Source: Octopus sinensis
Lineage: Eukaryota
DNA length: 64,000 nt
Reading direction: 5' to 3'
NCBI RefSeq assembly: GCF_006345805.1
Contig: NC_043003.1
Location: 58,528,001 to 58,592,000, forward strand
Each line of letters opens with the position of its first letter. The first letter of the stretch is position 1. Below, piece after piece: positions 21,301 to 24,300 of the stretch. Below the pieces are notes generated by a model. It did not search any database. It saw nothing but the letters and a program-made list of their open reading frames with translations, and was not told the DNA's origin. The translations under genes and the position numbers were made by a program.

Positions 21301-24300
21301 ATATTACTTTAGCTAATCTGTCTTAAGTGATTTTTTTATTTCCCTTTTCCCGCTTTTATTTATGTATGTATAATTCTGTCTATAAACTTATATAAATATA
21401 AAAATAAATATAAAAATAAAAAAATATAAAAATATTCTCGAGATTAATAATACTGTTCTTTTTCTTCAAGCTCATTCTAATTAATAATACCTTTTTTTCA
21501 ATCTCTTTCCTCTCATACTTGCAATCGTTGCTTGCACAGGATATCGTAAGTAACAATTTCCTTATGGAACATTTATCAAACTGTATTCTTCTGCGTACAT
21601 ATATGTGTGCTGTGTTATAGTTTAGAAAAATCATTTTTGCCAATAATTGAATGTATACGTGAATTATTATTATTATTAGTATCATTAAATGTTGCCGTGA
21701 GCAGATGCATCTTCGTTTCTTTCCGAGAATTTTATTATCATTATTATTATTATTATTATTATTATTATTATTATTATTATTGTTGTTGTTGTTGTTGTTG
21801 TTTGTTGTTGTTGTTGTTGTTGTTGTTGTTTTGTTGTTGTTGTTGTTGTTGTTGTTGTTGTGTTGTTGTTGTTGTGTTGTTGTTGTTGTTGTTGTTTTGT
21901 TGTTGTTGTTGTTGTTGTTGTTGTTGTTGTTGTTGTTTATATGTTTTTGTGTTGAGCACAACTGAAGGGAAAACATTTCTTTTTGGATAATTTCCAACAA
22001 AAAAAAAAGCTCTGGAAACGCGCTGTACGTTTACCTCTCGCCAAGGGAGACACAAAGTCTGTCATTTATAGGGGTGGGGTATAGTTGTATTTTTCTGTTT
22101 TGTGTTCACATTCAACTTAAGATGTTTCCTTGTCAAAAACCAAAAATAAAAACACAATAAAAAAAAGGGGGAAATTAAACGTAACTACGAAAAAAAAAAC
22201 GAACAAAAAAAAAACAAAAGAGCAAATTTAATTTTAGAGCAAAACCCACTTTTTTGTACACGAAAAGTAATAATTTAGCAATTAAAAATGTCAGTTTGAA
22301 CAGTTTTGAACAATGGCATTCTGTAGGAACAACATCACCGTCACCAAAAGCAACAGTACAACCGCAGTAGTCATAATAACAACTGCGACAGCAACCGCGA
22401 ATGCATACATATGTTGCCAAACGAGGAAAACAGTTTTCTCGATAGCAGCTGAGGCGATAAACACGAATAACCTAATAGAATAGATCTAAATAGGAGAGTC
22501 GCGTGGCACAGGGAAAACATTTCCTTGTCTGAGGTCTTTATCGCAGAGCAAACAAAAAAGGGATTTCATCTCTAAAAATACAGGAGTTTTCTCTAATGAC
22601 CTCAAAGTAACAGCTAAAGGTAGTCCTGGCCGAAGTATGCAGCTTATATTTTCAACATCGTGGAGCTAGATTGTTTTCAAATATGAAGACTCGGCGAAAA
22701 ACATGCCCATAGAGGACTTCCTCAATACATAGGACGATACAAGAGGGTCGCGGTTATGAATATTTCTAATAATATTGGCTCTTGGGTCGTTGTCACCATA
22801 ACGACACATTATGGGCAGGTGGTGAGTGGTGCAATAACTAGAAACGACATATGGTTGGGTAGGCTCTCTCTCTCTATCCGCTCAGTCGAAGTCGACTCTC
22901 AGTCACTCGTTGGATCAGTGTCCTCCAGTCAGTTCTGTCTTGGGCCGCTTCTTTCAGATTGGCTATTTCCATTCCGGTATCACTCTTGATGGTGTCTAGC
23001 CATCGGGTTCTTGGTCGGCCTAGGCATGCATAGACAAATGGTCCCATTTATCTCCTTCTATAAGTACCACAGTACCATTCCGAAGCAATTTTCCGTTGTG
23101 GCTAAGGAAAAAAAGCAATGAGGTAGATGATTCAAATGAGAAGTCTAGCTACTACACGTGTGGAAGCAACGATCAAATGAAGACTTACTTTGACGGATCT
23201 TGCAAAACAGAAAAGAAGAGAACAGCAGGGACAAACGCAACAACAACAACAGCAAATTACAGAATCTTTTGTAATCAAAGTATTACAAGTTGCAGCGGAA
23301 GAAGCTACTTCGCTCAGTCCTCAAATTCAACAATCAGGGACCCCATACTCCCACTCATGATCAGTAGCATTAATCTATTATCTTGCGACGACGAGGAAGA
23401 GATGAACAATGAACAGGAGTGACAAACTATTGAGAGAAATAGAAAGAATAAAAGAAAAGGCGAAAGACCTTTCAAAAAGAAAAATGTAGCCGAAAGAAAT
23501 GTGAGTTGAACGTACGAAGATGCTTTGTTCAAGAAGACTTGAGTTTCACGGTCGTTTGATTAACTAGCTATGTCTTCATAAATATGATCGTAGATTTTTA
23601 AGTTTGGAGAACGGAAAGGGATGAAATAGAACCAAAGTTCAACAGACAGTCAGTGGCTAAGCTATTGGTGAAAACCACATCAATAATCCATAATTAACTA
23701 GAAAATTCCAGCCCAAGAACGTGGATACTACTCGCCCGCCCCGTTTAACAGAGAAAATACTCACGAGCGCCTTGCGTACAACCAAGTTTCAATGCGCTGG
23801 GTGACAGGTGAACAAAATCGAGTGATGTCGGAACTCTGGTCTAACTTATGCTGCAGGTTCTCACTTGTGTGTGTATGACATGCTCTCATTTGCTTCTTGT
23901 GTTGTTTTTTCTTTATATATATATATATACTAGCAGTATCGCCCGGCGTTGCTCGGGATTGTTTCGGCCCTTTAGAATTGGAATTTTTGAAAAGTAAAAA
24001 TTTTGCATTATGTAGCTTGTTATTCTCTTTAATTGAACATTTTTCTGGTTGAAATACACCGAAAAATAGCGACACAGCAGTCAAGAAATCGTAAAAAATA
24101 TGGATTTTTATAGAAAAAAAGCACCTTTTTGATGTAAATAATTTTTGGTGTTAACATGGTCGGATTTGAATTTTTTCTTCTACGGAAGGAAGAGCAAGCC
24201 TTTTTCTATCATACTCTCAATTTTGGTCAACTTCCGCCGTAGGGTTTCGGAGGAGATAGTGTTATTTGAAGGCTACCAAATCTGCCAAACACAGACAACT

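Follow-up and report, generated by a model that had tools for sequence, protein, structure and literature searches.

In a 64,000-nucleotide stretch of Octopus sinensis DNA (contig NC_043003.1; hereafter the window, meaning the whole stretch analysed, with positions counted from its first letter), we identified six nucleotides, GATATC at 21540-21545 on the + strand, that are very probably a genuine protein-coding cassette microexon of the gene for the octopus TRPN/NOMPC mechanotransduction channel. NOMPC is the textbook channel gated via an ankyrin-repeat spring, and the microexon places two residues, Asp-Ile, within that spring. Judged from orthologous introns, the exon already existed when molluscs and annelids last shared an ancestor, if not earlier.

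A six-nucleotide coding exon in the octopus TRPN/NOMPC gene

Exon-by-exon matching assigned the window to the TRPN/NOMPC gene, as it codes for residues 573-1742 of XP_036360299.1 with 100% identity and zero mismatches. The portion of the gene present here, its 3′ two-thirds, extends over 187-61533 (+ strand) and comprises 19 larger exons and the microexon, mostly with one ankyrin repeat per phase-0 exon. Along the + strand, the phase-0 ankyrin exons are followed by linker, transmembrane and C-terminal exons, and the large transmembrane exon (48632-49519) also matches XP_036360299.1, so that the product has a long N-terminal ankyrin array followed by a six-transmembrane TRP channel domain. A search with a 1054-residue concatenate of the exons returned octopus proteins on top, then TRPN/NOMPC orthologues from across the animals, many of the fish ones named TRPN1, and the closest solved structure was that of Drosophila NOMPC (5VKQ, E=1e-96). 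Drosophila NOMPC and vertebrate TRPN1 are of the same family and architecture as the octopus protein, with a long ankyrin spring preceding the TRP channel. The O. bimaculoides orthologue XP_052825426.1 is assigned to nompC/TRPN in the supplement of PMC13402157. The O. vulgaris model reads LHLAAQ where XP_036360299.1 reads LHLAGQ.

The microexon lies in the 7.8-kb intron between the exons that we term e7 (17649-17750, + strand; 34 residues ending in ELVSMNSM, phase 0-0, donor ATG/gtaagg) and e8 (25541-25645, + strand; 35 residues starting with NGMTCAH, phase 0-0, acceptor tttag), close to the midpoint of the intron, with 3789 nt upstream and 3995 nt downstream. As both e7 and e8 are of phase 0, a 6-nt exon between them keeps the reading frame. 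The exon is stop-free, has canonical AG/GT flanks and is represented as Asp-Ile in protein models. The junction that results from inclusion reads AGCATGGATATCAATGGT and the one that results from skipping reads AACAGCATGAATGGTATG.

That the exon is already used in a gene model follows from the protein itself. Residues 865-866 of XP_036360299.1, which are Asp-Ile, were the sole residues that the alignment left unplaced on the larger exons, and the + strand of the window contains a single AG-GAY-ATH-GT site, at 21538-21547. Asp-Ile at 865-866 can therefore come solely from 21540-21545, and the RefSeq model of the O. sinensis genome thus already uses the GATATC microexon. A preliminary description of this DNA, made from its letters, had proposed a phase 0-0 exon yielding VSMNSM-DI-NGMTCAH, which is exactly what XP_036360299.1 contains. 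The same description had supposed that standard annotation would miss the exon, and here it was mistaken: the NCBI Gnomon model of O. sinensis includes it, as does an older O. bimaculoides model, and Haliotis and Pecten have annotated isoforms with and without the corresponding residues.

The arrangement of the gene around this junction is regular. Among the window exons from 187 to 37329, almost every ankyrin repeat occupies its own phase-0 exon, and the intron position is constant, at the finger tip directly before the G-x-T-x-L-H motif. In several other animals e7 and e8 are united in one intronless exon (open reading frames P0021, P0023 and P0033).

The insert recurs at the same junction in molluscan proteins and transcripts

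Our survey of the e7-e8 junction covered about 200 TRPN proteins. In cephalopods, gastropods and bivalves, two extra residues (DE, DI or DV) are inserted at exactly this position. Among gastropods, the insert is DE in Haliotis (P0085, P0230, P0231), Patella (P0087) and Littorina (P0098) and DV in Biomphalaria (P0255); among bivalves, it is DE in Pecten (P0242, P0247) and Ylistrum (P0249) as well as in assembled transcripts of Mytilus (P0214) and oyster (P0084). In contrast, none of about 90 representative TRPN proteins from annelids, brachiopods, nemerteans, arthropods, echinoderms, hemichordates, amphioxus and vertebrates carries it, so that the fly, vertebrate, echinoderm and amphioxus proteins sampled differ in this respect from those of octopus and other molluscs.

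Both Haliotis and Pecten have two pairs of RefSeq isoforms whose sole difference is DE, examples being XP_046353562.1 versus XP_046353563.1 in Haliotis rufescens and XP_033736704.1 versus XP_033736705.1 in Pecten maximus. In oysters there are full-length assembled transcripts both with the insert (L003, reading ACG GAC GAA AAC) and without it (P0224, P0228). Because these isoform pairs and both oyster transcript forms exist, the exon is an alternatively spliced cassette in gastropods and bivalves. The Haliotis rufescens and Pecten maximus pairs share with octopus the junction, the two-residue length of the cassette and its invariant Asp, and the exons are orthologous; they differ in that the insert is Asp-Glu in these two species and Asp-Ile in octopus. 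When the exon is skipped, the loop has the same length as in the TRPN/NOMPC proteins of all other phyla examined.

Conservation of the exon and its splice sites in genomic DNA

Orthologous introns preserve the exon together with both of its splice sites. The intron of Littorina, which is 5 kb long, contains ag/GATGAA/gtaagtatg, and the 536-nt intron of Crassostrea virginica contains ag/GATGAA/gtaagtata, the sole in-frame 6-nt candidate there. Corresponding sites, both known from genomic sequence, are ag/GATGAA/gtaagtag in the annelid Owenia and ag/GATAAT/gtaagtatg in the brachiopod Lingula. The form ag/GATNNN/gtaagta thus occurs once per orthologous intron in Littorina, Crassostrea, Owenia and Lingula. 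With each intron described by a first-order model, AGGATNNNGTAAGTA is expected 3e-5 to 8e-4 times per intron, and one was observed in each of five introns from three phyla. The preliminary description had suggested conservation in other coleoids as a check, and the exon proved to be kept far beyond these, in snails, bivalves and an annelid genome.

Across these sequences Asp is always encoded first and GTAAGTA always serves as the donor, the latter in each of the five orthologous microexons examined; the second residue may be E, I, V or perhaps N. Synonymous variants (GAT/GAC and GAA/GAG) suggest constraint at the level of the protein. Since the Asp codon and the donor are conserved in orthologous introns, the exon predates the mollusc-annelid split, and the brachiopod Lingula probably has the same microexon. 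Patella vulgata departs from this pattern: GATGAG (L001 15537-15542) is joined directly to e7 and is followed by gtaaat, an arrangement which indicates that the upstream intron was lost and that the cassette became a constitutive part of the exon.

Splice signals of the microexon

We located each of the elements that the preliminary description had listed around the microexon (a CTAAT, an AG-free zone, a pyrimidine tract, three TGC, GATATC and a GTAAGT donor). All lie on the + strand. A candidate branch point, CUAAU (CTAAT, 21477-21481), which agrees with the branch-point consensus CUAAY, is 63 nt 5′ of the microexon. It is followed by a pyrimidine tract, cctttttttcaatctctttcctctcatact (about 21490-21519), that contains UCUC/CUCU motifs and is set back by ~20 nt from the AG; a second branch-point-like site of the form YUNAY, CUCAU (CTCAT, 21512-21516), may be recognised 24 nt upstream of the acceptor AG. 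Past the pyrimidine tract, three UGC (21520-21522, 21529-21531 and 21533-21535) precede the AG. The acceptor AG occupies 21538-21539, within a cag ending at 21539, the donor gtaagtaa occupies 21546-21553, and the AG-free stretch upstream (21471-21537) measures 67 nt. Overall, the 3′ splice region has four UCUC/CUCU motifs in 80 nt and is 74% pyrimidine over its last 50 nt.

To judge such signals against chance, we compared them with other sites in the window. By itself, an AG-N6-GTAAGT site is unremarkable, with ~0.15 expected in the e7-e8 intron. However, when all 53 AG-N(3k)-GTRAGT sites of the window (both strands) are screened for the combination of an AG-free zone of >=50 nt, >=2 TGC in the last 25 nt and >=65% pyrimidine, the microexon alone qualifies, and a count of >=3 TGC within the preceding 25 nt is reached by just 0.15% of the 3423 + strand AG dinucleotides. 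Compared with the 15 constitutive acceptors of the same gene, which have 0-1 TGC each, the microexon alone has more than one TGC in 25 nt, and it alone has its pyrimidine tract set back ~20 nt from the AG.

These comparisons divide the 3′ splice signature that had been claimed for the exon into two parts. The three UGC, the displaced UCUC-rich tract and the CUAAU stand, whereas the AG-free zone is undistinctive and a distant branch point is not established. We accordingly downgraded the argument from a distant branch point and a long AG-free zone after setting it beside the gene's own constitutive acceptors.

Candidate regulation by Srrm234-eMIC

The microexons dependent on SRRM3/4 in vertebrates and on Srrm234-eMIC in flies and other bilaterians offer the closest precedent for such an exon. 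In flies and mammals, eMIC microexons are characterised by a long AG-free zone, UGC near the 3′ splice site, a UCUC-rich tract and CUAAY, the last defined as a branch-point sequence (PMC8797185), and that paper describes the eMIC programme as active in nonvertebrate bilaterians. The features of this SRRM/eMIC cis-code (UGC, a displaced UCUC-rich tract, CUAAU and an AG-free zone) are all present in octopus. The octopus exon further shares with this class a length of 3-27 nt that is a multiple of three, one or two residues added to a surface loop of a structured domain, a strong donor, a displaced pyrimidine tract and branch point, UCUC...UGC before the AG, CUAAY and deep conservation. In these respects the exon resembles a classical neural-type microexon, being short, frame-preserving, located in a surface loop, deeply conserved and equipped with an enhancer-type 3′ region. 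Two differences separate it from the class: its UGC element is not common to the oyster, Owenia and Littorina orthologues, and NOMPC itself is mainly expressed in sensory cells, so that a contrast of neural with non-neural tissue may be the wrong switch to consider.

Such features could act together as follows. Six nucleotides are too short for exonic enhancers, and recognition would rely on the donor; the GUAAGUA donor can pair with U1 over its full length and probably serves as the anchor in every lineage. A UCUC...UGC-type intronic enhancer between the displaced pyrimidine tract and the AG would be added to this anchor in octopus. By analogy, the architecture is of the kind to which the Srrm234 eMIC isoform binds in neurons, and inclusion would then be decided within the mechanosensory neurons that express NOMPC. 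On the basis of these cis-elements we consider it quite possible, just short of probable, that the octopus exon depends on Srrm234-eMIC.

Several observations weigh against the reading of the exon as a regulated, eMIC-dependent cassette. In the orthologous microexons of oyster and Owenia, UGC is missing from the 70 nt next to the AG, and Littorina has none nearer than -49. With UGC thus absent or distant, eMIC dependence is not demonstrably a conserved property of the exon, and the UGC element of octopus may have been acquired in cephalopods or be incidental. Nor does an AG-free zone of 67 nt stand out in this AT-rich gene, whose constitutive acceptors have zones of 12-331 nt, 7 of the 15 reaching >=54 nt; and because CUCAU at 21512-21516 sits at a usual distance from the AG, the branch point need not be a distant one. 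Patella, in which the six bases are fixed in the upstream exon, shows that at least one lineage can do without regulated inclusion, and the microexons of Owenia and Lingula are candidates from genomic sequence. With regard to octopus itself, the O. sinensis annotation has the included form only. Searches of the protein collection with 138-aa and 350-aa queries containing DI found no cephalopod transcript fragment across the junction, the best identities being non-cephalopod and the matches apparently restricted to <=~1.75x the query length. Octopus inclusion rests on two Gnomon models and conservation.

A first alternative grants that the microexon is real and alternatively spliced and holds that it is independent of Srrm234-eMIC, its recognition relying on the consensus donor and usual 3′ signals or on other regulators, and the octopus UGC being incidental. 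The missing or remote UGC in oyster, Owenia and Littorina fits this alternative, as does the undistinctive AG-free zone, and what is invariant across phyla is the donor and not the upstream region. However, the occurrence of three UGC in 21 nt is the 0.15% event among window AGs given above, and the whole architecture fits the published code. Moreover, UGC, found in 74-79% of human SRRM3/4 microexons and missing from 21-26% of bona fide ones, is not an absolute requirement (bioRxiv 10.1101/2024.09.17.613571), so its absence in other phyla does not exclude eMIC dependence. We regard eMIC-independent splicing as a serious possibility, while leaning against it.

Constitutive or alternative inclusion, and the annotation of the exon

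In a second alternative, the microexon is real yet constitutive in octopus, and the models that lack DI, O. vulgaris CAI9725800.1 and O. bimaculoides XP_052825426.1, are annotation failures at a 6-nt exon. The state of octopus annotation lends this some weight. For O. sinensis, the sole RefSeq product of the locus (XP_036360299.1, from NCBI Gnomon) contains Asp-Ile and has no isoform label. For O. bimaculoides, two annotation releases disagree: the older model (P0202) also reads SM-DI-NG, and Asp-Ile is absent from the newer one (P0081), as it is from the O. vulgaris model (P0082). The models of these last two species carry other evident errors, in the form of missing or replaced exons; in Patella the six bases are fixed in e7; and the RefSeq models of C. 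virginica and Mytilus omit the exon even though it is present in the genome or in transcripts. Against constitutive inclusion stand the Haliotis and Pecten isoform pairs that differ by DE alone, the de novo assembly of both forms in oysters, and a weak, enhancer-type 3′ splice site that is typical of regulated exons and not of constitutive ones. Taken together, this evidence makes constitutive inclusion in octopus unlikely, if by no means far-fetched, and favours a cassette exon.

The errors in the octopus models are of several kinds, as we noted on comparing them with window exons 12127-12225, 32342-32539, 2717-2845 and 48632-49519. In both O. bimaculoides models, 26 unrelated residues stand in place of one 33-residue ankyrin repeat, and the exon at 32342 is only half present. 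The O. vulgaris model omits the exon at 2717 as well as the greater part of the transmembrane exon.

Omission of the microexon extends beyond octopus, affecting the annotation of O. vulgaris, the newer O. bimaculoides model, Crassostrea virginica and Mytilus. In C. virginica the microexon is in the genome (L004 13239-13244) and the RefSeq protein omits it; in Mytilus the insert is in the assembled transcript P0214 and the RefSeq proteins omit it. The oyster and mussel omissions represent a systematic annotation gap for 6-nt exons. The practical point is that exons of this size are annotated inconsistently, being present in the O. sinensis, Haliotis and Pecten models and missing elsewhere.

The two remaining alternatives fare far worse. 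Chance splice-like motifs forming a pseudo-exon, or a modelling artefact spread between annotations via protein homology, might be suspected given that AG-N6-GTAAGT alone is expected ~0.15 times in the intron and that the search of the protein collection gave no cephalopod transcript fragment over the junction. However, ag/GATNNN/gtaagta occurs once in each of the five orthologous introns from three phyla at the very low expectations given above, the insert is present in assembled oyster and Mytilus transcripts, and its codons show synonymous variation; the cross-phylum introns and assembled transcripts effectively refute this explanation, to which we attach almost no credence. A noncoding role as a stepping stone for stepwise, recursive-like removal of the 7.8-kb intron, which the nearly exact mid-intron position (3789 nt and 3995 nt) might evoke, is rejected as extremely improbable because the exon is kept in the 536-nt oyster intron and is present in mature coding sequences with a conserved Asp codon, and because its start is not donor-like and would regenerate no 5′ splice site after a first step.

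Position of the insert in the ankyrin spring

To place the insert in the channel, we aligned the octopus e6-e9 stretch with DI (residues 2-137) to residues 760-893 of 5VKQ. As 136 octopus residues align with 134 residues of Drosophila NOMPC, the insert accounts for the whole difference in length. In an AlphaFold2 single-sequence model of the stretch (mean pLDDT 87.5), DI occupies residues 68-69, inside a non-helical segment (57-73) that joins the outer helix of one repeat to the inner helix of the next; that the model was built from a single sequence and was confident in one of five models counts against leaning on it heavily. The alignment to 5VKQ and the model agree in placing the insert in a loop between two ankyrin repeats, in keeping with the inter-repeat hairpin that had been proposed for it. 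Counting back from ankyrin repeat (AR) 29, we infer that the finger carrying the insert is AR20-AR21.

Within the spring, the insert would lengthen and acidify one finger loop and leave the helices untouched. A longer acidic finger could, on this model, alter local contact or the compliance of the spring, and the suggestion that the insert retunes gating is speculative. The most far-reaching proposal is that an ancestral lophotrochozoan, possibly older, microexon toggles an acidic finger-tip residue, is switched by neuronal Srrm234-eMIC in particular mechanoreceptor types and measurably changes gating, microtubule tethering or contact with a partner. We think it rather improbable that all of this holds. 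If the exon were indeed switched by eMIC and its finger residue altered gating, splicing would tune a force sensor in a manner conserved for >500 million years.

Irrespective of its regulation, the microexon represents a natural two-residue variant at a defined finger loop and hence a ready-made minimal perturbation of the spring that lends itself to an electrophysiological comparison of channels with and without it. As a sensory-channel case, it enlarges the small group of microexons known to be shared among non-vertebrate phyla. A NompC orthologue is used by octopus sucker mechanoreceptors, according to work cited in PMC12919962. Our literature search found no paper describing a nompC/TRPN microexon and none on microexons, eMIC and octopus together, and the combination of microexon and cephalopod gave an incidental reference only; a wider search on NOMPC splicing likewise yielded no pertinent paper. 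The exon itself is already public through RefSeq annotation; what is new is how old and how widely distributed it is, that it became fused to e7 in Patella and how inconsistently it has been annotated.

Other features of the locus

The remainder of the window contains repeats that are distinct from the coding exons. A long interrupted compound microsatellite, (ATT)n followed by (GTT)n, lies at 21725-21940, ~190 nt 3′ of the microexon; its length is likely variable among individuals, and it could impede PCR or read mapping in the e7-e8 intron. A second microsatellite, (TCA)n/(CCA)n, is located at 28477-28830, where a long Ser/Pro-rich open frame that continues into the exon at 28885-28983 is an open reading frame artefact and noncoding. 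The intron between the exons at 2717-2845 and 7411-7527 holds open reading frames of a non-LTR retrotransposon fragment (4438-6449, + strand), with matches to the Pfam domains RVT_1 (E=2e-24) and zf-RVT (E=5e-8). Finally, two families of short dispersed repeats, each with a recurring translated motif and a SINE-like look, are found in introns, one at about 39745, 40005, 40189, 42859, 43053, 43545 and 50482 and the other at about 39163, 58997, 62045, 62975 and 63613.

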